DNA from: Lytechinus pictus
Taxonomy: Eukaryota
Direction of reading: 5' to 3'
NCBI RefSeq assembly: GCF_037042905.1
Contig: NC_087246.1
Location: 53,134,001-53,198,000, forward strand
DNA: 64,000 nucleotides
Part shown: positions 6,694 through 30,404 of the stretch, piece after piece
Layout: each line of letters begins with the position of its first letter
Numbering within the stretch: position 1 is the stretch's first letter
Translations under genes and position numbers: made by a program
The notes under the pieces: model-generated
Seen by the model: the letters and a program-made list of their open reading frames with translations, nothing else
What the model was told of the DNA's origin: nothing
Database searches by the model: none

Positions 6694-6702
6694 CTATTTA
6701 TA
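6694..6702 (-). promoter_or_regulatory. TATA box of the LTR promoter
   Basis: TATAAATAG on the minus strand, ~135 nt inside the putative LTR start. Confidence 0.55.
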
Positions 6703-7187: not shown

Positions 7188-7383
7188 ATGTCGAGTTTAA
7201 AAAACATCGTTTCCCGGATGAATGTATGGTGGATGGCGTGTTTGTTCCATCTATGTCTTGCTTTCCGTGCTATACCACTTTCCACACCGGTGATCATCGA
7301 CGATATCGCAAAGGATCTTCAAACGACCACGGCTGAGGTCGGGATGATGTTCGCAAGTTTCTCAATAACTTTTGGTATTTCAG
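7188..7383 (+). CDS. SLC16/MCT-like MFS transporter, alternative first coding exon 1a (TM1-TM2)
   Basis: ATG, 65 codons + 1 nt, ends ...FGIS G^GTAAGG (phase 1). Splices in frame to the exon at 27936; predicted protein 586 aa. Confidence 0.75.
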
Positions 7384-7557
7384 GTAAGGCTCGGATCGTT
7401 TGATAACAAAAAAATGTGATAATATATCTTTCTATATGAGTGGGAAAATTTTCAGCCATGATACAGCATTTCAGATATTTACCTAGGGATACCTAAAGAG
7501 GGAAGATCAGTCCGAGCATGCTTTGTAGGTTTTATGACATCTGGTGACGGTGACTAT

Positions 7558-7707
7558 CAGGGGCCGCGGAAGCGGGGGGGGGGGGGGGGGGCTTCAGCCC
7601 CCCCCCCCACTTTTTTCCAAAATCGTGTGTAAAATGACCATATGATTGTGATTTTTTGCATGATCAGCCCCCCCCCCCCCACTTTGAAAACCGTTCCGCG
7701 GCCCCTG
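7558..7707. mobile_element. MITE with CAGGGGCCGCGGAA TIRs
   Basis: TIRs and ACTAT target duplication. Relatives at ~39920-40057 and 63400-63470. Confidence 0.85.
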
Positions 7708-7724
7708 ACTATCATTGCATGTAA

Positions 7725-8551
7725 GGAAGTGTATAGTGACTTGACTATATCTTTTTATATATCTCCATCTATATATTCTTTCCTTGTATATATTTTCATT
7801 TATATTTCAACATACTGTACATGTATATAAATTCTTTTTTTTATTTCCAATGTCATGTCTATATTCTAACTTGTTTCTGCCATGTGCAATGTACTACTAT
7901 ACTGTACTTGCACAGAACAAGGTAACTCATTTCCTGCCCAAATCTACTTGGCAAACACATTCTTAAATTGAGAGACAACCTTTCTGTTGTTCCTAGACTT
8001 GGAGCAAACATCCTTTCATTGTCCCTTGTTTATTGCAATGATTTTGCAGGTATATCACTACAGAGATGCTTGCATGTTTGCCTTTTTAACAGTCTGCTTC
8101 TCTCTTTGGCGCTTATTTCTTTGTCTCACCTTTTCTGATGTTGGTAAAAACAACTTGTTTTCTCCACCACATGCATCACTCTACTCTCTGCCTTCGTCCT
8201 GACCACTCATGCTGACCATCTCATCCAGCTGCTAGTGAGGATCGACTCAAATCTTGTGGAGGATCAATTTATACGTATTTCTCTACATTTTCCATTCTTG
8301 CTTCTTACCGTCACTTCCACTCCTTCGAAGCCTATATTCTCTGCAGTATTTAGTGAGCTCATTACTTCGCGAGACATTTTGTGACATCTATCCCTTTTCT
8401 ACTCTATTTGAAATCGTCAAGTGTAAATATTTCTTATCACGGGATTTGTGCAATTAACCTGAGCGGCTGGATCCCATTCTACTCTGGCGAGCAAGAATTA
8501 AGGTAGGACACATCTTTTTCTATAAATATTAGGAGAGCTGTACTAATTTCC
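7725..8551. mobile_element. ~830-bp insertion with weak GGAA..TTCC termini and a TAA duplication
   Basis: Removing it restores the left arm of the fold-back element. Confidence 0.5.
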
Positions 8552-8635
8552 TAAAGAAGGATTGCGTTATTGTCCATGCATAAAGCTACCCTGTAAAGAT
8601 CTGGGTATCATTGTTATTTCAAGATGGTTTTGAGG

Positions 8636-8846
8636 TGACACGACACGACATATGCTCCTGCGACATTTGCTCCGGTCTTAATATATCAGTGTTTTCTTGG
8701 GTTCGAGTTAGGATTGTAAAATATTTGGGGGTTTAGATAAAATAATGCAAATAGATTAGGATTAAGGTTTTAGAGGTAAGGTTTTGTGTTCGGCTCAGCG
8801 TGTAGATTTGTCATCGGAGCATATAATTATGTCGTGTCGTGTCACC
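8636..8846. mobile_element. MITE with GTGACACGACA..GCTCC termini and a GGTTA-rich interior
   Basis: Terminal inverted repeats. Relatives at ~19560-19700 and ~30435-30582. Confidence 0.6.
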
Positions 8847-9443
8847 TCAACACCACCCTGAAAGAACAATATACCCATGCAGACCTTTACAGGGTAGCTT
8901 TATGGACCTATGATGAAGAGGTGTACAATAACGCGAAACTTTCTAAGGGCTGGTCACACCGCCAGAAGTTTGCTGGAGCGGTGAACATTTTTATCACCGC
9001 TCGTTACCGTTCACCACCGTTTAACAGAAGTTGGCCCCCGGTAAGGCAACGCCGTATACGCTGGGCCATTGCTGATGGTCCCTCCTACCGCTCTGAAAGT
9101 TTTGAGTTGCACAAAATATTGCGAGCGGTGAGGAGCGGGCAATTTTCCGCTCCGACAAAGTTCACCACCGCTCCAACAACGCCCAGTCACTGTTTGGCAC
9201 CGCCAGACGCAAGCTCGTGGCGGCTTGGGTCCGCTCGGCCAACGCAGAAATCTTTAACTCTGGACCATAGCTCTGGACCACCGCTGCTTTGCCAGCTTTG
9301 TTCGGGCGGTGATTAAACGTTGCACAAACTTTGGTGGAGCGGTTTTAAGCGCTTTACGAGCGGACACGGGATTGCTGAAACGGTGTCGGGCGTTGAATTA
9401 TAGCAGCGATCAATTGCGGTGATGAACTTTGGTTTGGCGTTCG

Positions 9444-10829
9444 CAGTGGCGTACCGTGGGTCACGGCATTGGGGGGGGGGGGGCACCAGTAAAAATTTCG
9501 AGTCACTTATGGAGCGCGCGAAGCGTGCTCAGTTGCTAGGTATACTGACCTAATAGACACATTTTAATGACATGCAGTGCCATTACACGGATGTGTATCT
9601 CACTGATTAAATAATGCGAGCGCGAAGCGCAGGCTGAAAATTGTTGATATTCAGACCTAAAAAGGGACATAATAAGCAATTTTTTGTAATCATGATACGT
9701 ACCTGTCTCGCTAAACAAACAATGCGAGCGCGAGCTGAAATTTTTGTATACATTGAACCCATGCAAACAGGCCATTTCAAGGACTATATTTTAGGAATCC
9801 ATTAAGAGTATAAATATCTCAGCATAGTCATCTAATGCTAGTCCCATCCTTTGCTGATTTCGTTAGAATTACATCTAAACACATGAAGCACTTTTTGTAG
9901 TCATTGTAATCATTATAGCTCAGTCGGTAGAGCGGGGGTTTCGGATTCCGGTGACCCGGGTTCGATTCCCAAGTGGTGCGCTAGTGCCCTTTGGTAAGGC
10001 ATTTATCCTCATTACCAGGTCCCTCGGAGAGGACCTTAAGCCGTTGGTCCCCTGGTTGCTTGCTCACAGGCATTCGTGCTTTCTTAGCAGTCAGGTAAAA
10101 CAACCTCGGTATATATCATATCATTATCATATATGCATCTCACTAATCAATAACTGCGAGCGCGAAGCGCGAGCTGAAAATTTAGGAAATTCAGACCTGA
10201 AGAGGGACATTCTAAGGCTTGTTCGTAGGAATTCACTAAGACTTTACGTATTTTACTAACCAAATGATGCGAGCGCGAAGCGCGAGCTGAAAATTTTTGA
10301 TATTCAGATTAAAAAAAATTGATATTTTAAGGACTGATTTTAGGAATTCATGAAGAGCAGACATCTCACCAATAAACTAATGCGAACGTTAGCACGGACA
10401 GGAAATGTTTTATATTAAGACCTTAAAATAGGGCAATCACTTTAAGTAGTAATGAAAAAGAAGCAAATGTCACTACATAAAACACTAATAACTCGAATGG
10501 CGAGGAAATATATTTGGTGTATATTGATTCGAAAACGGGAGGTTTTAGTACAACAGGATTATATATCTCGTTAAACAGTCTATGCGAGCACCAGGAACAA
10601 TGAAGACATATAGGACCTGAGCAAATAATGTTTCATATGAAAAAATGCTTCTTATGTAATATAACATAATACAACCGTATAATGAACAATAATTTCTTCT
10701 TTTCCCACTACGTTTCTCTTCCTTTCTCCCTCTTTTTCTCCTTTTCCCCGTTTTTTTTTTTTTTTTTTTTTTGGGGGGGGGGGCCAGCCGATGGGGGGGG
10801 GGCACATGCCCCACGTAGTTACGCCAATG
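9444..10829 (+). mobile_element. hAT-like non-autonomous element with internal GCGAGCGCGAAGCGCGAGC repeats
   Basis: TIRs CAGTGGCGTA / TACGCCAATG; perfect 8-bp TSD GGCGTTCG (9436-9443 and 10830-10837). Confidence 0.85.
9916..10119 (+). mobile_element. tRNA-derived SINE
   Basis: A box TAGCTCAGTCGG, B box GGTTCGATTCC, non-tRNA body. ATCATTA on both sides (9909-9915 and 10120-10126). Confidence 0.85.
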
Positions 10830-11280
10830 GGCGTTCGTATGGAGTTGTCGGAGCGGGACCAGACTTTGGCTATAAATATGGGAGAAATGGACCAGGAGCC
10901 CATTTGGAATCTATCAGAACTTCTATCAAAGAGATCTGTTCAGCTCCGTAGTCAAAAGCGGTATGTCGCTAAAGCAACTTTAAACCCCCGTCGAGCCAAC
11001 GCGCGCATGCGCAGAACGCCGCTCTATCAACGCTTGCGTCACCGCTAAATCAACGCTCGCTACCGCTCGATACCGTTAAACCAACGCTAAAGCAACGCCG
11101 GTTTTAGCGGTGCACCGCTAAGGCAACGCCCGTGTTTTCGATTCCACCCCCCCCCCCCCCCATTTTGTGCACGGTGACGAGCGTTGTCGAAATTCGGCCC
11201 CCTCTCCCTATCGTTCAAGGAACGCTCAAACAAAGTTCGGGCGGTGTGGGCCTTTACATGCAATGATAGTCACCGTCACC

Positions 11281-13410
11281 AGGGGCGTGTTTCATGACGA
11301 GATGAGTGATACGTAGGAACGTCCTAGGACCATTCTTCCGAGATAGGGAGATTGGCGACAAATCAGCGCTTTCCGTTACGTTTCACAAAGGCAATTTCGT
11401 CTTCCAAGTCCGCGACATCGTTTGATATCGATAGTATCGGAAAAAATATTTAGTCTTCATCGTCACCTGAACCTTTTATTTCGGAATGACGACTCTTCAT
11501 GAAATCATATATTTCAATAAATGGAGATCAAATAATTTTTTTTTTTAATATTACTGATTGTAGAATTGATGTACGGAGCTTACTTCATGAGGTAAAAAGA
11601 GAAGAAAAAAAACTTTAAAGATTCACAAACATAACTTGATAAAATCGAAATTTTCATTATTCCCCTTATTTAGAACAAGGTGTCCTTTTAGAGATCCCTT
11701 TCATTGATATTTCGACGAAAGAGACCCTTGTCCGACATGAACATTTAATTAACCAAGTAATTTCGACATTGTATTAGCTCAATATTAGGAATTTTATAGA
11801 ATACTTAGTGATAATTTTGCAAATTATGCGTTAAATGTTTTTTGTTGAGGTGAAAATAGGGTTTGAATGGAGTAAACAAAATCAATGTGTCTGATTGTAT
11901 GAGACTAAAAAGGAAAATATGAGAGGCTGCGTGTGAAAAATCAAATTTATTTATTTTATTTGTCAGATATAACGCAAGAAATACAAATGTGAGTGTTTAT
12001 AGTATAAACATACCTTTGCATGATGAATAACCGAAGACAAGCAAAATATTAAAATTGCTGCAAACATATCCAAGTGGATAAAGTAGTGCTTCGCAATAAT
12101 AATTAAAACATAGAAAAAAGGTGTGAAATCAATCCGCAATGGAAAAAATTATATTTACAGAAACAATGCTTAAAATGACAACGCCATAAACGTTGGTCAT
12201 ATTTAAAGTTGATAAATTTATGGAAGTTTATATAAGAATATAAGCTTTAAGAATATAAAAAATATATATATTATGTTCAACATTTCAAATGTAAGGAGTC
12301 GAGACTATACATTATTGCTTTTATAGGGCCTATTATCCTACGATTTAAAATGCGCCTCTTCGTATGGATTTTCCTGAATCTTTTCAAAATGAACTTATCT
12401 TCATTTGTAATGATTGTGATGGATTCGTAATATGTAGGCCTAATCTATACTTAAATTCAATTAGCTACTTTGTTACTGCAGATATGTTTTTTTTTCATTC
12501 ATCATCTCAAGTTAGCACAAATCCAACAATCAATTATCATTGATTAAAATTAATCTCAGCTAAAAAAAAATGCAATGAAAATGAAATAAGAATAAATAAA
12601 TGATTTAGCATGTTTAGTAACATCTTAATTTTGTATCGTGTTTTTTTTTCTTGCTGAACGTTATAAACACGTTTTTCACCATACATAATTTCTTTTTTTT
12701 ACATTGTTTTCAGTCATGTTGATTATCGAATGACAAAGCATGAGGGGTCAGAGAGATTGCCGCCCATTTCGATATTACAAGTTTAATTGAAAAAAATGGA
12801 AAAGGGGTGGGAAAAAAGACGGAGGGAGAATAAAAGAAAGCATATTGAAAAAATTGTTTGGGTCTATTACCCCGGAGAAGTTAAAATGACATCCATTTTT
12901 GGCCGTCTTGCCGTGCAAAACGACCTGAAATTTATGACAACTAGCCCCCATATAAAAAAATAAATTGGCGCCATCCCAGATAAAATGCATCAGAGTGCAA
13001 ACGAATGACCCCCCAAAATGTTTAAAGGTGATATGTCAGTGTGGCTTGCCGTAAATGCATTTTCTCTTAATGCCTACGGTGGCGGGCGGTGTGCAAAGAA
13101 GGGGGCCCCACAAAGAAGATCATGCCTACGTAGGATAATTATTCCAAGGACCAGTCTTCGTATTGACCAAATCGGCTTTGTGAAACAGTTGAGCGATATC
13201 TCGTTATTACGTAGAGCGGTTCTACCAAAGACCATTTCATGAAACAGGCCCCATATCGGCTTTGTGAAACAGTTGAACGATATCTCGTTCTTCCGAAGAG
13301 CGGTTCTACAAAAGACCATTTCATGAAACAGGCCCCATATCGGCTTTGTGAAACAGTTGAACGATATCTCGTTCTTCCGAAGAGCGGTTCTACAAAAGAC
13401 CATTTCATGA
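11281..13410. mobile_element. 2.1-kb non-autonomous DNA element with a triplicated right end
   Basis: TIRs GGGGCGTGTTTCATGA / TCATGAAACAGGCCCC; AT-rich interior. Confidence 0.7.
13171..13410 (+). repeat. 84-bp tandem repeat, ~2.9 copies
   Basis: ATCGGCTTTGTGAAACAG starts at 13171, 13255 and 13339. Confidence 0.95.
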
Positions 13411-13886
13411 AAACCTAAAGAGGCGTAACATGCTCGGATCCCTGATTGTTTACTTCAAAACCGGTTCGATGACATTTGCTCGATCCGGCGACAATTGCTC
13501 CCATGAAAAATCTGCGCGTTAAGCCAAATTAGGCCCTCTTCCAGTGAAGTTCCCATTCAATAGATATCCTGAAAAATGCGGGGGTTTTCGTTCAAAATCA
13601 TTATTGTCAAACGCTCTGGCTGATGTTGGTAGGGGTTTGGCTCATGAAAGAACAACCTTTAAAAAAAAAGTCGGCATGTCTAATAAGCTAAAGCGCAACA
13701 CTGTTCTGAAGCTCACGCTTCAAGTTGTGTTGTATTTCTATCCCTTGAAAGGCTCCCGTCTGTAATATTCAGTGTCATTTTGTTGTCAATCTCTCCTCGA
13801 CCTGTTAAGTTGTCAAGGAAGCAGTAGGGCCTAGCACATTTGAGCTAGCCGACGGCATTCAACGATCTGATCTCGATCGAACGACG

Positions 13887-14097
13887 ATGTCGAAATTAAA
13901 AGGTTGTGCTTCACTCGGGGCTTCACTGCTGCACATATGGTGGATGGCATTCTTGTTCCATATATGTCTTGGCATCGGTCGTGGCGTACCGAATTCAGCA
14001 CCCGTGATCATCGACGATATCGCCAAGGACCTTCAAACAACCACATCTGTTGTTGGGATGTCGCTCGCGTCGTACACAGTTCCATTTGGTATTTCAG
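13887..14097 (+). CDS. SLC16/MCT-like transporter, alternative first coding exon 1b
   Basis: ATG, 70 codons + 1 nt, ends ...PFGIS G^GTATAA (phase 1). Paralogous to 1a (PVIIDDIAKDLQTTT identical); predicted protein 591 aa. Confidence 0.75.
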
Positions 14098-16194
14098 GTA
14101 TAATCCTCCTTTTGATGATGCATCGATTCAGGGGCTCCGCCTCAAAGGGTGTGGGGTAAGGGGGCGACCATGCACCCCGGCCAATCAAGTTATGATTTTC
14201 AAAGGGGTCAGAAAAGAAGGGGGAGAAAAAAATGAGAAAGGTATTCAATAAGGTCTGATGTGTAACACATTAATACCCCTATTAAATGTGACCTCACCGT
14301 ATAGTCGTCATGCTCCACCCCCTCTTTTTGCCCCTGGCTGCATCTTCCCTGTATGTTATGTTCTCCTAAATGTGCCCGTTAATGTGTGTGTGAAATAAAA
14401 TATTATAACTTGATGATCAGGGGCCCTCATTACGCCGTAGTATAATTCTATTCGACTTTAAATGGAGAGGGATGTCATTTTTTTAATTCATAGTGCAGCG
14501 CTAACTAAAAATTGAATAGATTTGACATGCAAAAGATCCACTTTTTATTATTTTTATTTTTTGTAATCCAAACGGCAACGTACTGATATCATTACCCACG
14601 GTACAGGGAATAAATATTCAAATTTATACCTTTTGACAAACAAATTGGAAATGCATGCCTCCATCGGGGCCTCGATCTGCCTTTGATTGATGATAATAGC
14701 AGAGAATATAATGGGGAGTGAGATATTTTAATTAAAAAAATGAATTGTATTAGCCATTATTATGTTATCACTTATTATGAAGTTATGCCAAAAAAGTTCG
14801 CTACCAGGTTCTCCCCTTGGCCTCCGGAACTGCCCCTTTCAGTTTGAAATTTAATTCGATGTTGTAGGTCCTATACTGGCTATATGTTCGGTATGTTTAA
14901 TCGGTACAGTTGTTCCCTGGGGTGTATTAATTGCATATCAATTTAGGACTTTAATTCGATGCTGTATTATGACCAAGTATACTGGGGGTGTCACATAAAG
15001 CTGCTCCCATGCAGGGACGGGTCCAGAATATACCCAAGATGGTGAGCACTTTGCTGGATAAAAAACATGACAAGAAGTAAATTACTGGAGAATCTGTAGA
15101 AGGTGATTACCACTTAACGTGTTTTTTTTTTTTTTTTTTTTTTTTTTTTTGGGGGGGGGGGGCGGGGGTTAATTTGCTTTTGTGCTTTTGACAATCATAA
15201 CAAGGGATCCTAAACTGCCAAATGGGGGCATTTCCTGTAGCCCCCTAGTCCGCTGTGCAAACCCTTCACTCGAGTAAACGGTCTGAATTACAGCCTACTC
15301 ATGCCATGTGTACTGAATTGAAACAGCAAGTTTTGTATGTGCTAGTCTTTGCGTGGAGACACACTTGTTGATAAAAGTTTCAATCAGGGTCTGTGCCTGC
15401 AGACTAGTAGCCCCCATGCATGGCTGTTTCTACAATTGCTTATAATATATTTCTGTGTAATAACATTATCTCACTGTAAGTCTATGCATTTGAGGGGATT
15501 GTAAAATGTATGAGAAGATTGTTATTCTCAATATATTCAAATTTATGGTAAAGTCGTTGAATATCTCAAAAACAAAACTAGATGTTTTGAGTTCTAAGTC
15601 GTATGGATATCATAATTTGAAAAACGGAGTTTTTAAAGAAAATAGTATTAAAAAAAAGGATTTTACAGAGAAAAAACAACAGAAATATTCTTTAAATTGT
15701 CATGAAAGGACATTTTCTGCAATTTAACAGAACAGGTCTGCTTTGAAAAAAAAAGTGTTTTATACAGGTAGTTTGTAAGGTTCCATACACCAAATACATA
15801 TTATTTTGTAATTTCACACAATGCAGGTAAGATTACAGGTCTTCTCGAGACTCTGCGACAGGAACTTCTGTTGAAATTTTCTAACAGTGTGCAAATATAA
15901 ATTGATTTGCTTTTGTTAAAGTTGATCTATCTCGGATCTGTCTGTCGTAAATCTGCATCAAAATTTGCAATAGATTGCAAATATTTTCTTGCAACATCCA
16001 TGGCACTGTGAACCATTTTTTAATAGGGGTTTTGTAAAGAATGATAAAAAAAGTATGTTTGGAGCAATAACCCTTTTTTGTCAGCCTGATTTTCTCGGGG
16101 ATGCTTCAGCATCTCCAGCACTCCCGCTTCCCAGGGCCATGCACAACACCTTATAACTCTAGTACACCCCCTTCAATGATTTCTTCATTCATAC

Positions 16195-16463
16195 CTGGGC
16201 CCCGTCTTTTAAAGACTTACGATTGATCCGATCAATCCCAATTCTATGGAAATCCAGTATTGTCATAATATTTTCTTCAAGAAATTTTTAAAATGTCCTT
16301 TGGAAACAAAAAGAAGCACACTGAATTTTCAAGAAACCATGGATGTATGAATACATCCTAGAAAATATTTTGAACAAACATGCATTTCAGATGTTGAAAT
16401 TCCTGGCTTTCCATAGTTGTGATTGATTGGATCAATTGCAACTCTTTATAAGACGGAGCCCTG
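16195..16463. mobile_element. MITE
   Basis: Imperfect ~60-bp TIRs CTGGGCCCCGTCTT...AAGACGGAGCCCTG. Confidence 0.8.
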
Positions 16464-17304
16464 ATCTTTTATATTAGTTTGCGTTTGCGGGGGGGGGGGG
16501 GGGGTAAAAACGGTATTGAAGAGTTACTCTGCCATAAGCTAGACCTACTAACCAGAATGTACTGGTTTCATGTTACCAGATGTTATTGTCCCTGAGTGAT
16601 GACAAAAAATATTATCTTAGGAAGAATGATAACGAAAATGTCATGTCGTTAATACGATTAAACCCTTTTATTACACAATGGTTTTTATGATCAGTTTCCT
16701 TCAAAATAGACGATGAATAAGGCTTTCAATGGCCCATAATGAAATGTGCCAACTTCCTTTAATTGTTTGTGTGTATGCTCAAAGGAGGAAGAAATCTTTG
16801 AGAAAGGAAAAGTTGAGATAGAGAGATACGCAATGATAATAATAAAAAAAATCTATTTACTTTCTTTAGCGATCCTCAAATTGGCAGTGTTGCTTCAAAG
16901 TGACATGCACAACTTTCTTTATATTTTGTGCACAAAACATTCGCAACTATCTCGAGGTGCAGATTGTCTTCTTAGATCATGATATTTCTTAGGAAAATGT
17001 ATTCCGACACAACATGTTGAGTTCCCGGATTGAGTTAGATAATAATAACATGAATAGGAGAAAATAAGAAAATCTTTTTCGTGTTCTTTTCATCTTCCAA
17101 TATACATGTACATACCAACGAATTGCTTATCTGTTCTCTTCCAACCACAATTCCTCCGAAAATGGTCTCAGAAAATGAGTGATATGGACGCATCCATATC
17201 AATTTTCACTCGCTTTTCCGTCACTGGTAACGTAAATTCATTTTTCTATTCCGATTTTTAATCTCACTTTCAATCTGAAAGTTCTCGTATCGTAAGATAA
17301 AACC

Positions 17305-18809
17305 TAAAGGTCAAGTCCACCCCCAATTTTTTTTGTATTAAGTAGTTTTTATTGACAACTTCAATTCATATACAAAATAAATATATATAACAAATAGAAG
17401 TTTGATGTCTTTACAAATTGATAAATACCTTGACAACTCATAAATTAAACATAATTTTTTTCTTGAATGTTACAATAAAACACAATGTCAGACATCTTTC
17501 AATACATAATTATAAATAACATTGATGATAATAATATGCATTAAGAATAAACTTCTACAATAAATTCAACATATTGAATTTTTTTCAGTGTCAAATAAAA
17601 ACATAAAAAAGAGATTTTCCAAATACACAAAAATAAATCATTAATAAAACCTAAACGAATTGAAGCCATCAGCATATATTTTTTAAACCCATCGCCTCGG
17701 CCTCTTCACTCAAATAAATTCAATCTCAACAACAAACTCAGCCCTGGACCCTACCCCCCCCCCCCCGACCCTCCCTAAAACACCCCCACCCCCTATCCGG
17801 TGGAGAACTGGCTCTGGGCTCCAATAAATGGTCTAATATTTAAGTTTTCCCATTTAGAGAAATAGAGTCCCCCTCTTTGTTGATAATTTCTTTTCTTCTC
17901 TTTGATCCCCCCTAATACTATTTTTTTTCATTCAATGAAGGAGGTTTTTTTAATTCTCGGTTTTTGTAAATATGATATTTAACTAAAATCAAGACATGAT
18001 TCATTAATTGATATTTACCCTTACTTTTCTCCTGCTTCCCGAAAAGAATTTCCTGCCAACTAAATTTATTTATTTCAAAATTTAAACTTCTTGCACACAG
18101 ATCCCAAAGTGATTTTGAAAATTCACAAGTATAAAATAGATGTTCATACGTTTCTTCTTCCTTTTCACAAAATGAGCATAAATTGGTCGAAACAAGACCG
18201 AAACGGGAAAAAAACGGGGAAAAAATTGTAGATATGAATCGATAGAGAAAAATCAAACAAGCTTAACTCTGAAAATTTCATCAAAATCCAATAAGAAAGT
18301 TATGAAATTATATAAAGTTTTGCTTATTTTTCACAAAATAACACATGCACAATAATATTTAGTCAAATGAGAGAATGGATGATGTCCCTCACTCACTATT
18401 TCTTTTGTTTTTTATTGTTTGAATAATACAATATTTCAATTTTTACAGATTTCACAATAATGACCAACTTGATTTGACCATAAAAATAATGTTAAACAAT
18501 GGTAATTCCACATGTTCAGGGAGGAATAAACTTTGTTTCACATGCAGAACAATGAGGAGAAAATTAGAATATTTCATGTAATAAAATGCAAAAGAAATAG
18601 GATAGTGAGTGATGTCATGCAGTTCCCTCATTTGCATACCGAACGGGACGTGCATAAAACTCCGTTTGTGAAATCAAGTGAAACACAAAATTGTCATAAC
18701 TTTCTTATTTTACATCCGATTTTAATGAAATTTTCAGTGTAATGCCTTTGTTGGATTTTCTCTTTTTTATTAAAATCAACGTTTTATTGGGGGTAGACTT
18801 GTCCTTTTA
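17305..18809. mobile_element. TTAA-type (Kolobok-like) MITE interrupted by a LINE fragment
   Basis: TIRs TAAAGGTCAAGTCCACCCC / GGGGTAGACTTGTCCTTTTA with long internal inverted arms. A second, truncated copy lies at 18874-19340. Confidence 0.8.
17326..18213 (-). mobile_element. 5'-truncated L1/Tx1-clade LINE (ORF2 C-terminus, 3' UTR, poly(A))
   Basis: CSFCEKEEETYEHLFYTC is a C-terminal CCHC zinc knuckle, followed by W-rich L1-type helices. T-run at 17326-17335. Confidence 0.8.
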
Positions 18810-18873
18810 GAAAAAAAAACTTCATACGTCCGGTCCCTAGATTGAGGGATTTTCTGATTGGTTTGACGATTGA

Positions 18874-19340: not shown

Positions 19341-20899
19341 TTATTGTACTTTGTATGGAAGTTTTTTTCCCCCAGTCCTTTTTAAATTAAATTTATTATG
19401 TCTTTATTGTGTTTACTAGTATGTCACAGTGCACTCGTTACAAGCTTTCCTCCATTGTAATACAAATTTTAGAGAATGTATTAATGCTTATGCCTTTGGA
19501 AATAAAATAATGTTGAATTGAATTATCGTTCCGAAGTTTCGGACGTATACATTATGAACGGTGACACGACATTCGGTCCGGCTCCGGACTTTATATTGCT
19601 GCGTCTATAGTCTAAATCTAGTGTTGAAGTTGGCCATTCCAATACTAATGCGTGGAATTTGCAGCGGAGCAATTGTCGCCGGAGCAAATGATACGGAACC
19701 ATTATGAGCTGGTCCAGGAAAAAATCTGCAATTGAGTCAACTCGGCTCCACCGAAAAGCCTAATTTTCTACAAGCTATGCTTTTTATTTAGGCTCCTCCC
19801 TTTTTTTACATTTTGTAGTGTACCTAATTGTGTTAAATACTTATGTTAGATAGCCATGATAGTTAATTTGATCATTGATACACTGTTTATGAATACATTT
19901 GTTATGTATATTATGTTATTTGTTTTTAAAGTGGAATAAATAAATAAAAATAATAATCATAAAGTTAGGTCCCGAGTTGTCCACTGCAAAACATAATCCC
20001 AACCATAAACTAGGTAAGATTGTTACCAATATACACAAATCAATTGAATAGTAGAAAACAAACATTTGTCAACAAAATAATAGCTATCAGAGATTGAAGA
20101 ACACGGCACCCAATTTTTCGGCGGGGCCGAGTTGTGCAGAATTAGCTGGCATGCACCCGTATGAAAGGGGCGTCCCCCGTTGTTTTTCAAGTAGGACCTG
20201 AGTAGTGTTGAATATACACCTGAATTCAATTTGGTATACCCCCCCCCCCCCCCCCTCTATCAATATACCCTGGCACTGCTATTGCGTATATGGATTGATT
20301 GGTAATCAAAAACTTTTTGTGTGTGAATTATGACGGTCGGTTGCGTTTGATTCCAGATTTGTACGTCATGATGGTAGGTCTTGGTAAGTCTGAAAGCGGG
20401 ATAAGTTATGGTTGACTATCATTAGAGCAGGAAGTCGATGGTATTATGAGAGAACTAATCAGTGTAGCAAAATCACGCGAAATAAATCGTCATTACGCAA
20501 ACATGTAATAAAATGAGGTCACCACAGTGCAGAGTGAATCGATAACAGCGAGAGCGCTGCACATTGCCAACGGTTCACAGAGATTTTGCACGCAAACCTA
20601 TGAGAAACAAGCGAGAGCGAACGATTCCACGAGCTTTTCCCCCTTCTTTCCCTTCCCGGCGATTTGTCCCAAAACAAAAGGATTTCCGCAAACTACGATA
20701 CTTTGTCTTTCAACTTTATTAGCATCCGATCTATCCATGCCGATTAGATTATTACCGTGCCATTTTGTTATAAATTAGCAAAAGAACATGTACATCAGTT
20801 TTGCCAAGCTGAATAAAACGACTGGTAGGCGTTTAATTATGACAGCCGTCATTCACGTAAACTTTTGAATCCGATATGTGAACTTTCATTCTACACTTA

Positions 20900-21456
20900 T
20901 ACGCTTTTTACACACGCTAAAATTTCCTTAACCCCGTACTATAGGTGGGGCTAAATTGCTATTTAGCCCCACCTATAGTACGGGGTTAAGCTTAGCCCAC
21001 TTTCTTTTTACACAGCATTTTTGCAAAGTGGGCTAACCCCACCTTTAGTACGGGATTATTTGGCCCTGCAAAAAAGCAGGGTTATCCCAGCAATTGCGGT
21101 GCTAAGAGCGATATAGTACGGGGTTAAGATCGCTAGTGTAAAACGAAAGTGGGCTAAGCTTAACCCCGTACTATAGGTGGGGCTAAATGGCAATTTGGCC
21201 CCACCTATAGTACGGGGTTAAGGAAATTTTAGCGTGTGTAAAAAAGGTACGAGTGAAGTACTTGTACTATACGAATGATCGACAAAAACCACTAGTCCGG
21301 GGTTAGCGAGTTTCGTGTCTGAAAAGCAAGCATTCCTTATCCGGGGTTAGAAATAACAATTTGGCATGTGTGAAAAGGAAAAAAATAGTACGGGGTTAAG
21401 GATAGTACGGGGTTAGCGATAGTCCGGGGCTAAGAAAATCCTGTGTAAAAAGGGTA
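20900..21456. mobile_element. Highly palindromic MITE built from a TAGTACGGGGTTAAG motif
   Basis: 20900-21249 is largely self-complementary with two internal ~63-nt hairpins. Termini TTTTTACAC / GTGTAAAAA. Confidence 0.8.
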
Positions 21457-22035
21457 GTAGTGTACTGGTATGCACACAGTGATATATTGAAGATTATTTG
21501 CGTACATTCAGAGGTAAAAGCAACGGGAGCATAAGATTGAAATGTACAATAAAAATCAGTAAAAACTATATAAAAATGATGAGTACGTCCTTGATGCAGT
21601 TCACTGACACAGTGAAGGAATTATCAGGATCATCAATTACAAGACAGATGAACATTATGAAATTATAAAACTTACATGACTTGTCCAATACCACATGAAT
21701 CATAATATCCCTTAGGGGAAAACGGTGACTATTTTAACTGGTACTGGCTGGCATGTCCCGTAGTCAGTTAGCATGCATGTTTTGTAGGCCTACATTTTGT
21801 AGGCCTACACAATGATCACGATGGTCAGAGAACAATTTCCCTCTTATCATGCTTATATCATTACATGTATCATGTGTATACCAGGGAGATGGGGTTTGGT
21901 GTGTGCATGGAGCTACTAACTGGTGTGTGCATGCAAGGAAAGATACCTGAGGCATAGAGCTATATGCCTGAGGTATAGGCCTTAGTTTGTGTGTAAATGT
22001 TGGGTCGGCTCTTCGGTCAAGAGCGCGGGTGCTGT

Positions 22036-22363
22036 TAGTCCAAGGAGAGTGATATCTCCTTGGTTAGTCTAGTTCTAGACGATTTTAAACGAATCTATTT
22101 GCACCGATATACGTTCTATTCCGTGCGTACGCCCAACCGAGTGTGCGCGCAAAACCGAGAACCTGTACTCCGAGAAAATCGGAGTACAGGTTCTCGGTTT
22201 TGCGCGCACACTCGGTTGGGCGTACGCACGGAATAGAACGTATATCGGTGCAAATCGGAGTACAGGTTCTCGGTTTTGCGCGCACACTCGGTTGGGCGTA
22301 CGCACGGAATAGAACGTATATCGGTGCAAATAGATTCGTTTAAAATCGTCTAGAACTAGACTA
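22036..22363. mobile_element. Palindromic element with TAGTC...GACTA termini and a 9-bp TSD
   Basis: GGGTGCTGT at 22027-22035 and 22364-22372. Perfect inverted arms around a GAAAA loop (22174-22178). 76-bp duplication in the right arm. Confidence 0.85.
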
Positions 22364-22709
22364 GGGTGCTGTGTGCATCGTTGCACGGTGCAAGCATCTG
22401 TGTCAAATACGCGCGAAACGACTAATTACAGGCTACAAAAATCACTCGACCATGCTGCCGCTCTGCGAATTCGGTGCGCGAAGATTACGTAACTTTCATC
22501 GAAATTAATACACCGTAATGATGATTTCGTGTTATTTTACTACACTGCTAATAGAAGAGCTATACCGTCGAGACCATGTAAGACTTGGGACCTGCATATA
22601 TTGTTTACGTCCAATCAGTGATCAACGATACTATAACGGTTAAGGGGCGTCAAAGAAACGTGAATTCAACGTCGATTTCGATAACGAAAATTGTCGCCTT
22701 CATCGAGGA

Positions 22710-22896
22710 ATGATGTGTTTAAAACATTTCTTTTCGCTCTGGAGGGTGGCGACGGCGTTTTTCATCTGCACGTTGTTTTCAGGTGTTCATACTTGCCTGC
22801 AGGTGTTCATAGATGATGTTGCGGTACACCTTCGTACGACCACTGCTGTGATCGGAATGACATTGGCGATGTTTGTAGTTCCTTTTGGCATCTCAG
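22710..22896 (+). CDS. SLC16/MCT-like transporter, alternative first coding exon 1c
   Basis: ATG, 62 codons + 1 nt, ends ...VPFGIS G^GTGAGA (phase 1). CpG-rich upstream region with CCAAT at ~22611; predicted protein 583 aa. Confidence 0.82.
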
Positions 22897-24013
22897 GTGA
22901 GACTCAAATAGACTCCACCCCCCCCCCCCCCGAAAAAAGGGGGAACTGAATAATATGAGCACTATCGGACTAATTATACGGATCCTAATTCTATTTCAGT
23001 TGGAGCATCCAACTATACGAAGCGAGGGTCTTTTAATATAGAAAAGCCTAGACTTGAGTTTTGATAATAAACATTCCATTCAAAATTACTTGTATTGAAT
23101 TATATGTTATACCCTGTTTTACCTTGTGTTATCAAACTGTAAATATCTTGTAAAGGATCTTGTATATTTTTTTGTTCTACTTTGTATTTTTGTTTTGAAC
23201 AGAATAGTGGCAGATGCCAATGATCGATGTTCCAATCAATTTACTACCAGTTACAATTCTTTTACTCACTACTACACTATAAAAGCAGAGATCGACAATA
23301 AAAATCAAACTTTGTGTTTAAGATTTTAAACCCTTGTTAAAACTTATTAAACAACCACTGTAATGTTCATAATAAGCAGCGTTGAATAGGGCTCTCTCGA
23401 AAACCAGTTTTCATCTACTGGAGAGACCACCCTGTCTAAAGAAAACAGAATTAAATGAATAAATAAATATTTTTTAAACAGCGTGTTTGCTGTACGTGTA
23501 GCAGACATCCATTGTCCAGAAGAAACAAAACAAAATGATAAGATAAATTCGATGGAAGACAATGAAAATTAAAATTATAAAACATTAGGAATTATAGGCC
23601 TGTATACCTAATATTTTTGCGAGGCCGAGTTGTCTTATGTACTCAGTTGAGCTGGACCCGTCTGCACTTGATCTATCAAGCGCAGCAGTATAAGTTAACC
23701 ACCCCTTTGATGGCCATGCATGCAGATCCATCTTCTAGCAGAATCCTCATTGATTTATCGATTAAATCTCATCCAATAAAATCGTATAGCTGTTCGTAGT
23801 TTGAGAGAGCCCCTTATCACAGAACATATAGAGCCTCCTACCCCTTCCTAATAATCAAACCCCTTTTGTCCTATAACCCAACACCATTAGATTATAATTT
23901 GCATTGAGGAAATTAATGTGAAACAAGGTTGGGAGTGCACGCAAAAGCTCACCATACATCGAGCCTGCTATTGCTGAATATTTTCCAACTCAAGTTGTTA
24001 GAATGCGGTTATA

Positions 24014-24232
24014 CACTCTAAAAACAGAAATGTTAACGAAACATTTTATTTTGAAAGGTTGGAGGAGTGACAACATTTTCTAAATGTTGCATTTACCACT
24101 TTAAATGGTTCTACCCAACACTTAAAATGTTGGATTCAGTTTTATACAAGGTTGGATGTAACATTTGGAAAAGGTTGTCACTCCTCCAACCTTTCAAAAT
24201 AATGTTGATTTAACATTCGATTTTTTAGAGTG
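24014..24232. mobile_element. MITE with CACTCTAAAAA termini, flanked by TA
   Basis: ~70-bp TIRs; related element at ~37830-38069. Confidence 0.85.
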
Positions 24233-25609
24233 TACTGCTGAATATTGACATATAATAGTTTCCTGATGTGTTTATGGATTTTTCTTATTGATGCTCCCTA
24301 ATATCTAGATAAGAGATCCCATAACACATGCACCGATTGTCTGTACATATCGGGGGCCTGTTTCATAAAGTCTAACAATTAATTGTCATGGCTGTGGTAA
24401 CTTTGTCATTATTGTAACCACGTTAAAACTTGATTGTGAGTGGCTGCTGAGCCATGTTCTTTATGGTAGTTTCCATAGATGTAACTCGTTATGAAACAGG
24501 ACACTATGTCCTGTACACAATTATGCTTTTATTATAATAAACAAATACCTTATTTCAGTAAACTTAAACGCATTCCGATGATTTGAAGAGTTATCCATTT
24601 ATTTTGCTGCTATTGACAGTTTTGCACATGCTGTTAACACATTCATGAATTATTGTCAGATGTAAATATCGAGGATAAGTGAATATAATATTTCTAAAGA
24701 TCAGAATCATGACAGACAAACAAGCGACCCATACAAGACAACTCACCTGAGGCCAAAACCAAGCCATATTTCTTTTCATGCTAGGAATGCAAATATTACT
24801 TTCAAGGCCATGTTTTCGTTTTGAGAGAGTTAGATTTGGTGTTGAAGGAGGTGAGGTCGATCCCTCCACCCCCGGTATGTAAAAACATTTACAGCTATAT
24901 TCTTTTGTTGTCGGCGGTTTGATAACAAAGGGCGCTTTTACTGAACCCCCACAACAAACATAATCTGATCTTTAATTCAAATTCACATTTTCATTATTCT
25001 ATAAATCAACAAATGTAAATCATTCAAATGTAAACACAGGGACGCGGCGCTGAAGGTTTTCGAATGGATATATTGTCCTTATGCAGAACCATGCAGAAAT
25101 TAATGGTGATGGAAAAATTGCCTGCGACTGTGGGGATCGGATGATCAGACGATCACCCCATTTTGTCCGAGTCATGCACTGCCAAAGCCCGGGGGAGGGG
25201 GACACTATGAAACGTATGTGCCGCGGTCTATGGAAGGAGATCAAGTGTCCAAAATATTTTGGAACACTTCGCCTTTCGAGACCCCATTATCAGCCCAAAT
25301 TTCCGTTCCATGCAGAGCATCACCAATTTAGAAAGCCATTGAAATTCTTATTTTTTTTTCTTCCGTTGCGGAGACCCTCAAATTTGTGGTTCCCCGTTCC
25401 AGTGCGCGTCCATCGTGAACTGCTCAGCTGGACGGCGCCGGTCAGTCGGGTATGGAGACCCCCATATTAATTCTGATATAGTCAGTTTCAGAACATTGCA
25501 TTTCTAGCAATCGTTGTTCCTAGAGCCGTTCCGGAGACAAGTTTAATTCCAGAGCCCCCTATTTTGGACTTATAATTCAAGTAGCCCTCCCACCCCCGGT
25601 GCCAAAGAT

Positions 25610-26030
25610 CTGAGGAGCGTTTCGTCTTTTCATGACAGAACTTGACGGACGTTAAATCCGAGAAGTTTGTGTTATCCGTTACCGTACATTAACCAGTGGC
25701 GCATCTACAGGGGTGGGGGTGTTAGGTGGTTTAACCCCCCCCCCTCGGTCTGCAAATTTAAAATTTTAAAAGTCATGACCTTATTTTAGAGCAAACATCT
25801 TTTTTGTGCTTTTCACTTTTTTTTCATTCGGTACCAAATGGCCTTCCTAGTAGAGAACCCCCCCTTTTTTTTTTGGCTTTTTTTTGCTTGTCAAATTTTT
25901 CGGTCAAACCCCTCCTCCTTAGAAATAGCCAGATCCGCCCCTAGTAACAATGCCTCTTAGCCAATCAGAATCAAGGAAAGTTGTCAGATTTGACAACTAG
26001 TCTGACAAAAAGTTGATGAAACGTTTCCCT
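25610..26030. mobile_element. MITE (family of 48650-48822) interrupted by a CAGTGGCG..GATCCGCCCCT element at ~25695-25943
   Basis: Flanking halves align to 48650-48822 (AGCCAATCAGAATCAAGGAAAG). Confidence 0.7.
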
Positions 26031-26375
26031 AGAGTCTTTCAACATCAAAGGCTTCAATTAAGCTTTCATCTGACTTTGTTTTATGATCCGAGAAGAAGGG
26101 TTTGGAGACCGAAGTTTGGCGTCATTGTTTCTCTCTTTGGGTCCTTTGTCTTCTTTCTATTTCTCCCTGCTTTCTTCTGTCATTTATTTTTTTTCACTAC
26201 AGTCTTGGAAAAAAAAAACAGAAGGATTTCATCACCGCCTACCCTTTAACGTCACCCCTGTATAAATCATTTCATTATAACAATAAAAATCCACCCAGGT
26301 GTAGTAAATGGGTACCTGGTAGGAAAGATCCTTGAATGCTCGAGTGTCCGATCAGGGTAGCCTGGCTGAGCGCTT

Positions 26376-26550
26376 ATGGTGCAGTCACATTTCTCCTACG
26401 GCGGCCGTACAGTAAATCTAAAACAGCCGTTTTAACATTTTTGTATATACCAGCTACATATAGAGTCTATAGACGGATTGAATTAAAATGAACAAAACGG
26501 CTGTTTTCGACTCGCTGAACGGCCGCCGTAGGGGAAATGCGACTGCAGCA
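26376..26550. mobile_element. Harbinger-like MITE next to a SINE remnant (~26289-26375)
   Basis: TIRs TGCAGTCACATTT..CCTACGGCGGCCGT / ACGGCCGCCGTAGGGGAAATGCGACTGCA. Confidence 0.75.
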
Positions 26551-27935
26551 CAGAAAATAATTAAGCCCGAGTCACATATAGACCCCGGATCCTATCCGGG
26601 ATAAATTTTTCCATGTATAGTGATAGTCAGGCGCCTGAGACCACTCGGCCACTGCACCTCCACTAACTTTAAAGAACTTTATAGGCTGACAACGATATAG
26701 CTTGTATAATATGTAGGGCCTAGCAAGTAAAGTAAATGAATGTTGTTGTTTATAGGTTGATAATTTTCTACATTATGAAATTCCGCTACACACCCTTCGG
26801 TTTTGATTTTTTTTTTATTATGCTTCCGCCCACCATAGGTATTGGGGGTTGTCCGTCTGTTTATCCCGATTTTGTTCTCACGATCCTGATGATTACAAAA
26901 TAATCATTTGAACTCGACTTTGAGCTCTTGATCACTGTCGTGCTCTTTTAGTCATCTGGTCACTTTCTTTCTTTCTTTCTTAGGATTTGAATACCACATA
27001 ATATGTCGGGGTATCTTCCATGGTGTACATCTTCATTTAAAAAGTGTTTAATGCACTATCCTAACAAAAATGGGAAATGTAGTTTGAGAAAAGTTGCTCA
27101 TATGCTTAATACTAACGGGTTTACACGTGTCTGTGTGATTTATTTTATAAATCTAAAATGTCTTTTCCTGCGATAACTGAAGAATCCTTATATTGATCTA
27201 ACTTTTTGAACACTGAGTAACGGTGATTTGATCTGATTATGGAGTCACCATACAGGTTATTATGTCATAGACGCCATGGCTCATTGTCACAACAGATCAA
27301 ATGCATAAATTATAAATTAGTCAGTGACTAACTGACAGTGAGTGCATAAGAAAGAGACTAATGATTTGATTAGATTATGAAAGCTTTGAAGTTATTGATA
27401 CGGGGGGGGGGGGGCAAGAATTTCTACTACACCTAGTTATCTTTCAATCGTTTTCTTTCACACACCATATTCCATACTTATGTATCTTTGACGTATCTTT
27501 TTTTCCAAAAAGGTTGCGTGACATCGCCCGATTATAAACAAACCTTGTCTGCAGAATATTAGCGTAGTTTTGCAATGCTACGCAGACGCTCTCTACAACG
27601 CACCAGTTCCTTTGAAAATGCTACTCAAATCACAAAGGACAGCTGCAATGAGATCGAGGTTTTTGTCGAAAGCCCTCAGTTGGTAGACCAATTGCAGATC
27701 GTCCGAAAATTAGGACCGGACGAAAAATTGCAAATATCTGATTTGTCCAGAGATCCAGGATGACCCTGCTGTTATGATTCACCGATTTTCGACAAAGACC
27801 GTTTTGTCAATGAAAGGCTTTTTACTAAGATTTCTCTGCGCAGTGATCGATTGGGAAAATGCCCAAATATCGGAATGATGAACGTTACTGTACTTTAATG
27901 TTTTTCTTTAACTTTTATTCTATTCTCGATTTCAG

Positions 27936-28079
27936 GACCAATAATGTCTTACGCCCTCAACGTTGTAGGATGTCGACCGGTAATAATGATAGGTGGTGTT
28001 CTGCTGTCTGCAGGGATATTCACCATGGCATTCGCAAGGCACATTGCGTTCATTGGGATTGGATATAGTCTGCTTGGAG
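27936..28079 (+). CDS. SLC16-like transporter exon 2 (constant)
   Basis: Polypyrimidine tract and TTCAG acceptor. 144 nt encoding (G)PIMSYALNVVGCRPVIMIGGVLLSAG...YSLLG, the typical SLC16 TM2-TM4 motif. Donor GTAAAG at 28080. Confidence 0.92.
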
Positions 28080-28398
28080 GTAAAGTAAAAAAAAAAACAT
28101 GTACCTGTATATGATATGGAGTACTGTACGAAACATTTTAAATTGCACCAAGTGGATGAGATCGAGAGAAGGGGAGGAGAGAGAAATGAAGAATGTAAGA
28201 AGATACTTTGTACTTCGGGATCCATCGAAAACCATTATAAAAGGAGGGGTAGAAAGAAGAAGAACAGACGAAGCTGGGAAAATATTGTAATTTTTATTTT
28301 CTGTCAGTATCAAGAGGTATCTGTAATTAGCTTTCTTCATCAAGCACATTAATCATTATTTGTTCCTCAATTTGTTATCGTTTCATTCTTGTCCTTAG

Positions 28399-29661
28399 GG
28401 ATTGGAGGAAGTGCCATCTACACTGCATCTACAGCTACCATTCGACAGTACTACTCTGACCGTCACTATGCTCTAGCTAATGGTGCGGCAATTACAGGCG
28501 TCTCCGTGTCGGTTTTTGTCTTTTCACCAGTTCTCAGGGTCCTTGCTTCCTTCTACGGATGGAGGGGGGCTTTAGTGATCGCTTCGGCCATATCGCTTAA
28601 CACTGTTGTCATTGGTGCACTCATTAAACCTGAGGTCATCAGGAAACGAAGACCGGTGGTCAGTGATGACTGCAAAGTATCCGACCTTAATCATGTTAAT
28701 CATGACAATGATGAAGATGATGTGAAAAACGGCACACATGAACTCCTGCTTCGACAACCTTTCTCTGACCAACAACCTACTTCCTGTCTGGAGTCTTCAA
28801 AAACAAAAGACCATAGAGGCTCTTCTGTGGGAGCTGCCGAAAACCGTAGTGAATCGTCTGACAACGAAGAACGTTATCCATCATCAACGGGTAATCCAGC
28901 CCATGGTGATGACTGTCGCTGTGACTCAGATGAAGATATCGACGAAAATAAAGAATTGGTAGAAGGTCTAGTAGTTTTGGATAATCACGTTGATGTCAAG
29001 TCTGGCGTCTCCATGACAAAGGACAATAGATGCTCTCGATCCAATGTCTCTGGAGAAGACAATCTTTCGAGTTGTCAAGATTGCACCGGTAGTCAAACTG
29101 GAGTGAATGATATCCCAAATGAATATCATAACCTTGAGAATGCAAAGGTCGTTCGATCTACTTTTAGAATATCCAATCTTTGCAAGTTCAGTGCCAAACC
29201 CATCAGTCGGACAACCTCAATTTGCCACGCTGCACTTCTCGTCGCCATATTTTTCTCGTCAGGTACCTACATGACCTGTAGCATCTTCCTTGCCACTGCT
29301 GGAACGCATGGAGGACTCTCTCCCATGCAGGCAGCTACACTCCTCTCTGCCTTCGGGATTTCCCAAGCCGTTGGCCGTTTTTCCAATGGCATCATAGTGA
29401 TGAAAGGGTATGTGAAAACCACGCATCTGTACATAGGAGCACAGATACTAGTGGCATCGTCCTCACTAGTCCTAGGGCTCCTGATAAGGGTTTATGCGGT
29501 TGCTGTCTTGGCATCTTTGACCCTCGGAGTGTCTGCAGGGACTGTTGTCTCACTCAACATCGTCATGCAGAGGGTGATCGATGACTGTGCCAATTCAATC
29601 TCGTTAGGATGGCTTCTCCTTGTTGAAGGTTTTGGTGGTCTCTTCGGCAGTTTGGCATTGG
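28399..29661 (+). CDS. SLC16-like transporter exon 3 (constant; TM4-TM11 and the large central loop)
   Basis: TAG acceptor at 28396-28398. 1263 nt with QYYSDRHYALANG, YGWRGA, QAATLLSAFGISQAVGR. Donor GTAAAT at 29662. Confidence 0.95.
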
Positions 29662-29786
29662 GTAAATGATTTGTTCTTTTTTCTTGTTTTTTTGTATTGG
29701 TACTATAGTCCTGCTAAATGTTGTCACATATTTGTAATTTTTAACCTGTGTTAAGCAAAGTGTGATTATTATCGGTTCGTTTGACT

Positions 29787-29976
29787 CAGGCGCGGATCCA
29801 GAGGGGGCACACGCCCCCCCCCCCTTTGAGAAGAGAAATTAAAATTTGTAATGTAAAAATATAATTGAAACCGAGATGTGCCCCCCTTTTGAAATTGAAG
29901 ACCTTTTTTTTTGCTTGTCAAAATTTTCCTCCGAAAAATTCCCCCCCCCCTTTGGAAAATCCTGGATCCACCCCTG
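29787..29976. mobile_element. MITE in the last SLC16 intron
   Basis: CAGGCGCGGATCCAG / CTGGATCCACCCCTG; 8-bp TSD GTTTGACT. Confidence 0.85.
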
Positions 29977-30246
29977 GTTTGACTTGACTGACTTACGTAG
30001 CCCTGGTCTTGTAATCATTAGTTTCTGCTAATTCATCTTGCAGATGACAATGCAGTTCATGATGTGTATAAGGAAAATTCAACTAACATAGGATGGCTCA
30101 GGCCGATATTATTTGAAATGATCGAACATAAATTATGAATAACAAACAAAGTTCCTTCCACTCGACCAAACAAACGGGATATATGATTTTATCTTAGTCC
30201 ATAATTCTTGCAATATATTTACATCGTCCTGTTTGTATCTCTGTAG

Positions 30247-30404
30247 GTTATCTGAAGGATGTGAGTGGTAGCTTTCTGCTCACTTTCGTTCTGGCTGCAG
30301 TCTTCTCGTCACTGTCTGCTGCCCTCAGTGTTCTCATCCTCATTCTCAAAAGACGGGAAGCAATGACCTTGAAAAAGGGCAAACCCAGAACCAAAGCAAT
30401 CTAA
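30247..30404 (+). CDS. SLC16-like transporter terminal coding exon (TM12)
   Basis: CTGTAG acceptor. Encodes (G)YLKDVSGSFLLTFVLAAVFSSLSAALSVLILILKRREAMTLKKGKPRTKAI-TAA, matching the SLC16 G-x-L-x-D-x-x-G-x-Y/F motif. Confidence 0.9.

Follow-up and report, generated by a model that had tools for sequence, protein, structure and literature searches.

Vertebrate genes with multiple variable first exons are numerous, and include UGT1, GCNT2, the protocadherin clusters, plectin, NOS1 and the glucocorticoid receptor (PMC1885805). Each Ugt1 cluster carries tandem variable first exons ahead of four constant exons, and the organisations of Ugt1, Gcnt2 and Ugt2a have been described as vertebrate-specific (PMC1885805). 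Here we describe a gene with this layout in a sea urchin. It lies in a stretch of 64,000 nucleotides from Lytechinus pictus (genome G000, contig 2, positions 53,134,001-53,198,000), which is free of any N and is referred to below as the window. The gene, whose product bears the public name monocarboxylate transporter 13-like, has three tandem paralogous coding first exons (1a, 1b and 1c) followed by one set of constant exons (2 to 4). The locus is a real variable-first-exon and constant-region gene, and as such a small further example of a well-known design.

The variable exons of UGT1 each have their own promoter, and GCNT2 has three variable first exons. The Lytechinus gene resembles both systems in that first coding exons that are tandem paralogs and have individual ATGs and 5' splice sites would be joined one at a time onto shared exons, with the variable part corresponding to the specificity-determining portion of the protein and the constant part to the rest. 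In contrast to GCNT2 and UGT1A, the Lytechinus protein is a polytopic carrier of the major facilitator superfamily (MFS), and its variable exons are short (62-70 codons), covering the first transmembrane helix (TM1) to the middle of TM2 rather than a whole domain. The locus also differs in having three exons only, in belonging to an echinoderm, and in that we infer its separate promoters. In scale, GCNT2 would be the nearest analogue.

The protocadherin alpha and gamma clusters resemble this locus in that their variable first exons are lined up ahead of constant exons (PMC1885805). They differ in having a dozen or more large variable exons, each of which encodes a whole ectodomain plus a transmembrane segment. 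Promoter use determines the choice of protocadherin exon, which is stochastic and relies on CTCF and cohesin, whereas nothing at the Lytechinus locus points to stochastic choice, no search for CTCF-type elements having been made. Within sea urchins, a close counterpart is found in the tandem MCT13-like paralogs of Strongylocentrotus purpuratus (LOC752956, LOC583189, LOC762827 and others). These belong to the same subfamily, have four coding exons, and fall into the same two classes of first exon (A and C) as the exons described below. However, every one of the S. purpuratus genes combines a single first exon with a separate set of exons 2-4.

We found no paper that describes this organisation for an SLC16 carrier, nor any that deals with the sea urchin gene itself, and we know of no variable-first-exon SLC16 carrier. 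Nevertheless, the novelty of the arrangement was overstated in an earlier note on this DNA, since many genes with multiple first exons are known (PMC1885805) and the 1b/1c pair is already annotated in Lytechinus variegatus.

Organisation of the locus

The features of the gene are as follows, with positions counted from the first letter of the window.

6896..7187, + strand: 5' untranslated part of exon 1a as far as covered by contigs of runs X1 and X3, a minimum that may extend further upstream
7188..7383, + strand: variable first exon 1a, 196 nt, 65 codons plus 1 base, A class, donor CAG/GTAAGG
13887..14097, + strand: variable first exon 1b, 211 nt, 70 codons plus 1 base, A class, donor CAG/GTATAA
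22710..22896, + strand: variable first exon 1c, 187 nt, 62 codons plus 1 base, C class, donor CAG/GTGAGA
27936..28079, + strand: constant exon 2, rest of TM2 and TM3, phase 1 at both ends, sole copy in the window
28399..29661, + strand: constant exon 3, TM4-TM6, a long acidic loop and TM7-TM11, match to Pfam MFS_1 (expectation value, E, 1.1e-13)
30247..30404, + strand: constant exon 4, TM12 and C-terminus, stop codon TAA at 30402-30404

All three first exons begin with an ATG and end in the same way, with FGIS encoded ahead of a final G/GT in phase 1. The acceptor of exon 2 is preceded by a long pyrimidine tract. Spliced in silico to exons 2-4, exons 1a, 1b and 1c yield open frames of 586, 591 and 583 amino acids, respectively. 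A tblastn search of the window with the products recovered exons 2-4 in single copy, and matched the first exons to one another (E 2e-19 for 1a/1b and approximately 1e-8 to 4e-10 for matches to 1c). A six-frame search of the whole 812-Mb genome returned the same three first exons and no fourth. Exon 3 of this type is likewise present once in the genome, the remaining matches being distant paralogs. The locus has two hallmarks of a variable-first-exon organisation, namely tandem paralogous first exons and one shared downstream set.

The first exons are 63% (1a/1b), 52% (1b/1c) and 44% (1a/1c) identical in a MAFFT alignment. At the DNA level, the similarity between 1a and 1b stops at the exon boundaries, and the duplications are therefore old. 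No relic of exons 2-4 was found between the first exons in the tblastn search of the window, the best match (E=1.6, at 27548-27682) lying inside the intron between 1c and exon 2.

The earlier note had been made from the sequence alone, and its description of the locus has held up well. Its coordinates, frames and product lengths were all correct on recomputation, its single copy of exons 2-4 was recovered by the window search and, for exon 3, genome-wide, and its hand-counted identities (36/53 for 1a/1b and 23/53 for 1b/1c) are close to the MAFFT values for these pairs. In contrast, its suggestion that further variable exons may lie to the left found no support, as there are none in the L. pictus genome or in the 7.9 kb upstream of exon 1a in L. 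variegatus.

Two more distant matches lie on the same contig. The nearest L. pictus paralog, at G000:C2:53289301-53290284 on the minus strand, is about 155 kb to the right of the window start, corresponds to exon 3 and has 41-49% identity. A weak exon-1-like match (E=0.36) is present 190 kb away at C2:53327782-53327925, also on the minus strand.

Conservation in L. variegatus and selection on the first exons

The order 1a, 1b, 1c, followed by single exons 2, 3 and 4, is found in L. variegatus at two places on CM031016.1. The ATG, the frame and the donor hexamers are retained in all three first exons, and protein identity between the two species is 92% for 1a, 96% for 1b and 79% for 1c. Blocks conserved between the species are also present upstream of each first exon; the one upstream of 1a begins at 6849. 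The two L. variegatus loci (L015 at 20.9 Mb and L016 at 28.1 Mb) are about 7.2 Mb apart, share about 98% nucleotide identity through introns and flanks, and are each annotated as a gene with isoforms X1 and X2. The second copy stems either from a segmental duplication of very recent date or from the misplacement of a haplotype.

Public annotation treats the two species differently. In L. pictus, RefSeq holds only the 583-amino-acid 1c product (P0001), which is identical to 1c plus exons 2-4 and is represented by two accessions of identical sequence together with near-identical older versions. In L. variegatus, RefSeq isoform X1 (P0003/P0016, 587 amino acids) has an N-terminus 96% identical to that of 1b, and its model joins 1b directly to exon 2, whereas isoform X2 (579 amino acids) has a 1c-type N-terminus. 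Alternative use of 1b and 1c is already modelled in the annotation of the sister species, and the L. pictus annotation has a gap, with one of three forms listed.

We compared the first exons and their flanks between L. pictus and L. variegatus, applying a Fisher test to the mismatches and estimating the ratio of nonsynonymous to synonymous substitution rates (dN/dS). Synonymous divergence between these species is approximately 0.06-0.15, and mismatches make up 7-15% of the aligned positions in noncoding flanks.

Exon 1a: mismatches 6.1% in the exon and 15.0% in the flanks (p=7e-4); gap events 0 and 8; dN/dS 0.27
Exon 1b: mismatches 2.8% in the exon and 12.2% in the flanks (p=6.5e-6); gap events 0 and 20; dN/dS 0.32
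Exon 1c: mismatches 10.2% in the exon and 7.0% in the flanks (p 0.9, not significant); gap events 0 and 5; dN/dS 0.92
Exon 3: dN/dS 0.30-0.35

With 1a and 1b pooled, the excess of synonymous changes has p=0.013. Between the paralogs 1a and 1b themselves, dS is 0.67 and dN is 0.25 with both frames open, which prolonged neutral decay of either exon can hardly explain. Purifying selection on 1a and 1b is supported by the comparison with the flanks, by the absence of indels, and by dN/dS values of about 0.3; the earlier note had argued for selection on the first exons. Constraint is weakest on 1c, the one first exon that the L. pictus annotation recognises, with 14.5 nonsynonymous versus 4.5 synonymous changes. 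This pattern points to relaxed or diversifying selection on 1c.

Transcription of exon 1a and competing explanations

Words of exon 1a occur in five L. pictus sequencing runs, which come from two studies, and runs X1 and X3-X5 contain all of the sampled words of both 1a and exon 3. Exon 3 is also present in runs X6, X10, X11 and X22, of which X6 has next to no 1a words and the others are not among the runs listed for 1a. In run X1, a contig of 514 nt (depth 7) covers 6896-7384 and then continues for 25 letters off the genome; in run X3, a contig of 304 nt (depth 2.9) covers 7097-7384 and then continues for 16 such letters. The intron at 7416-7517 has zero depth. Exon 1a is transcribed in L. 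pictus and its donor is used, contigs of two runs leaving the genome exactly at 7383/7384, and the transcript starts at or before 6896. The runs comprise about 90-190 Mb of contigs compared with a genome of 812 Mb, and between 6600 and 8100 they cover only 6896-7384 besides high-copy repeats. They therefore behave as RNA.

These high-copy repeats are short elements at 6600-6700 and 7560-7720 that reach very high depth in all four of the runs examined, with contig word depths in the thousands and raw RNA read depths from tens to about 200. Many loose ends occur there, at 6615, 6677, 7557 and 7707. The repeat at 6600-6700 overlaps a candidate short interspersed element at 6513-6684.

Logan contigs are built with k=31 and contain each 31-mer once per accession (PMC12424806). 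Base 7384 is a G in the intron and a G is also the first base of exon 2, so that the two contigs run 26 and 17 letters past the end of exon 1a. At its 3' end, 1a has its last 4 letters in common with 1c and its last 13 in common with 1b. The overhang predicted past 7383 is 31-5=26 letters where the contig merges with a path from 1c to exon 2, and 31-14=17 letters where it merges with a path from 1b to exon 2. The observed overhangs (1+25=26 in run X1 and 1+16=17 in run X3) match these predictions exactly. This is indirect evidence that 1a is joined to exon 2, in the company of 1c transcripts in run X1 and of 1b transcripts in run X3. The 17-letter overhang in run X3 is also the one sign, again indirect, of 1b splicing in L. 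pictus.

In the explanation that we favour, the locus would be one gene of SLC16 type (monocarboxylate transporter 13-like) in which three tandem paralogous coding first exons share constant exons 2-4. Each first exon would supply its own start codon and 5' splice site, and transcription from any of them would lead to splicing of its donor to the acceptor of exon 2. First exons lying downstream would be removed as intron, provided that a weak acceptor-like site upstream of 1c, the only first exon inspected for such a site, is not used. Each first exon presumably has its own promoter. All variation among the products would fall in the stretch from the N-terminal tail through TM1 and the TM1-2 loop to the middle of TM2. 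We put the probability that all three first exons yield mRNAs joined to exon 2 at roughly 0.75. The proposal of the earlier note, that one locus makes three transporters, stands for 1c through L. pictus RefSeq, for 1b through isoform X1 of L. variegatus, and for 1a as far as its transcription; for the joint of 1a to exon 2, the argument from overhangs is what we can offer.

Several observations weigh against this explanation. The junction of 1a to exon 2 is deduced from the lengths of the overhangs, its letters not having been read. The contig of run X1 lies on the minus strand and its 25 loose letters are assumed to extend beyond 7384, while the contig of run X3 is shallow. The assignment of runs X1 and X3 as RNA is a guess of the tool, although their unique coverage is confined to exon 1a. 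No 1a read was present in the 6% sampled from each of two raw RNA runs (X7 and X8), an absence that says little, as expression of the gene in these runs is not established. No short protein containing 1a words (1a plus exon 2) was found in a collection of 5.8 billion proteins. Neither 1a nor 1b has an annotated product in L. pictus, and 1a lacks one in L. variegatus as well. The two L. variegatus loci are so alike that they count as one witness only. The two species are also close (dS approximately 0.1), and the selection tests draw on 6-12 substitutions per exon.

Exons 1a and 1b could instead be the leftovers of two dead tandem copies that lack exons 2-4 and are perhaps transcribed and spliced at a low level, with only the 1c protein being of consequence. 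Whole-gene tandem copies do exist in S. purpuratus, where A- and C-class first exons reside in separate complete genes, and such a history is in keeping with the 1c form being the only one in L. pictus RefSeq, with the lack of 1a reads in runs X7 and X8, and with the low depth of the contigs in runs X1 and X3. However, conservation of 1a and 1b exceeds that of their flanks 2.5- to 4-fold, both exons lack indels and have a dN/dS of approximately 0.3, and it is 1c that has a value of 0.92. Moreover, L. variegatus RefSeq includes a 1b-type isoform, the contigs stop exactly at the donor of 1a and have overhangs of the lengths expected for splicing to exon 2, and the stretches between the first exons hold no relic of exons 2-4. 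We consider this explanation unlikely.

The splicing of 1a or 1b to a site other than exon 2 also has to be weighed. An acceptor-like site with a pyrimidine-poor tract precedes 1c, its AG at 22706-22707 being 2 bases ahead of the ATG and in frame. Joining the 1a or 1b donor to this site would keep the frame and add a leader, giving a protein with tandem TM1-2 segments, or would produce a non-productive transcript. The 2 end letters shared with the 1c leader in this case predict an overhang of 28 letters past 7383, but 26 and 17 were seen, and L. variegatus isoform X1 joins 1b straight to exon 2; we regard use of this site as highly improbable. An artefact in which three near-identical tandem genes, each first exon having its own downstream exons, were collapsed during assembly was named in the earlier note as a way for its proposal to fail. 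Beyond the general risk posed by repeat-rich sea urchin assemblies, nothing favours it. The independent L. variegatus assembly has the same layout with a single constant region at both loci, which makes a collapse in L. pictus extremely unlikely. In addition, the window contains no N, one exon 3 of this type is present genome-wide, and genes whose first exons are 44-63% identical would not collapse.

The encoded carrier and its history

The match to MFS_1 is obtained with exon 3 alone. The best solved relatives in a phmmer search are human MCT1 and MCT2 (E 1e-19), and the top solved matches comprise these two, a bacterial L-lactate transporter, MCT10 and MCT8. By its MFS fold and by its closest characterised relatives, which are SLC16 proteins, the product is an SLC16-type MFS carrier. 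Both halves of the protein align to MCT1, the C-terminal half weakly (8 bits). The likeness to human MCT1 and MCT2 (SLC16A1/A7; 6LYY, 7BP3) consists of six N-terminal helices that align and a long loop between the halves. This loop, between TM6 and TM7, corresponds to residues ~236-403, which are hydrophilic, acidic and unaligned. Sequence similarity to the human proteins is low.

Residue K38 of MCT1 (in TM1) and the pair D309/R313 (in TM8) have a role in proton coupling. At the equivalent positions, the 1c form does not carry Lys, Asp and Arg, a reading of the phmmer alignment with 6LYY that is tentative in its weak TM8 part (8 bits); the TM1 position equivalent to K38 is also not Lys in 1a and 1b. 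Because these positions differ, and with the weakness of the alignment in mind, the carrier is probably not of the classical proton/lactate type.

Exon 1 aligns to MCT1 residues 20 to ~71, a stretch that runs from TM1 across the TM1-2 loop to mid-TM2 and stops at the conserved G-G-P. It agrees with the earlier note, in which the first exons were read as the N-terminus through TM2. The TM1-2 loop is near-constant across all of the first exons, with the pattern (V/F)IDD(I/V)...L.TTT...G(M/I), most of the variation being found in the N-terminal tail, in TM1 and where TM2 begins. The remaining ten and a half helices are common to the three products. The isoforms may differ in substrate handling, targeting or expression domain.

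In S. purpuratus there are at least six related genes, five of them clustered on one scaffold and one elsewhere, all of them complete with a single first exon and separate exons 2-4. Class A comprises P0022, P0024 and a third gene at L017:30536, and class C comprises P0004, P0020 and P0007. A tree of exon 1 sequences separates A from C with support of 99/98, placing 1a and 1b in class A and 1c in class C, and a clade of all Lytechinus exons is rejected by the approximately unbiased test (p-AU 0.0099). Both classes therefore predate the split of the two genera. Exons 1a and 1b are sisters in this tree (90/94), and their duplication thus took place on the Lytechinus side. The constant regions show a contrasting pattern of similarity, as those of S. 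purpuratus are 79-90% alike (79-83% between A and C genes) and 64-66% alike with that of Lytechinus. The history of exon 1 therefore differs from that of the constant region.

Two histories would fit these data. In one, A and C first exons would already have shared a single constant region in the ancestor, and the locus would later have been duplicated in Strongylocentrotus, each copy keeping one first exon. Alternatively, the ancestral genes may have been separate, with exons 2-4 homogenised by conversion in Strongylocentrotus and those of the upstream copies lost by deletion in Lytechinus. A tree of the constant region rooted on distant paralogs gave no choice among a S. purpuratus clade, Lytechinus with C, and Lytechinus with A (support 48/63; p-AU 0.17 and 0.34). 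Relics of either history were absent from the stretches between the Lytechinus first exons and from the S. purpuratus introns and 10 kb upstream. No second first exon was found in the first introns of the S. purpuratus genes or within 10 kb upstream of them.

A candidate relic of a C-class exon in the 12-kb first intron of a S. purpuratus A-class gene (E 0.003, L017:18901-19020) was taken as a chance match, because it lies in a long open frame unlike exon 1 that is retrotransposon-like by eye. The X2 isoforms of three S. purpuratus paralogs (P0005, P0006 and P0009) start at methionines inside exon 2, which suggests transcripts with other, non-coding or unrecognised, 5' exons.

Directly upstream of exon 1a, at 627-6071 on the minus strand, is the remnant of a Ty3/Gypsy-type long terminal repeat retrotransposon, with the domain order aspartyl protease, RVT_1, RNase H and integrase (zinc-binding, core and C-terminal SH3) spread over several frames; L. 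variegatus has a different sequence at this position. Between 1a and 1b, the approximately 5.8 kb at 7520-13339 has no counterpart in L. variegatus, where the interval is 1.2 kb, and is probably a lineage-specific insertion. This interval includes an 84-bp tandem repeat at 13167-13412 as well as further internal repeats.

The locus opens no new category of biology. It does indicate that the variable-first-exon design is also used in an invertebrate solute carrier, where the exchanged unit is no more than the first helix pair of a 12-helix MFS protein. L. pictus is genetically tractable, and the isoforms could be knocked out singly. S. purpuratus has the same exon classes as separate genes, which provides a clean comparison between one gene with many first exons and many genes. 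A more far-reaching possibility, which we offer tentatively and consider rather doubtful, is that promoter choice equips one MFS carrier with three modules of TM1 and TM2 that line the cavity and differ in substrate or regulation, while Strongylocentrotus holds the A and C modules as whole genes. If true, the locus would offer a natural case, open to dating, in which alternative first exons and gene duplicates of a membrane transporter have been converted into one another.

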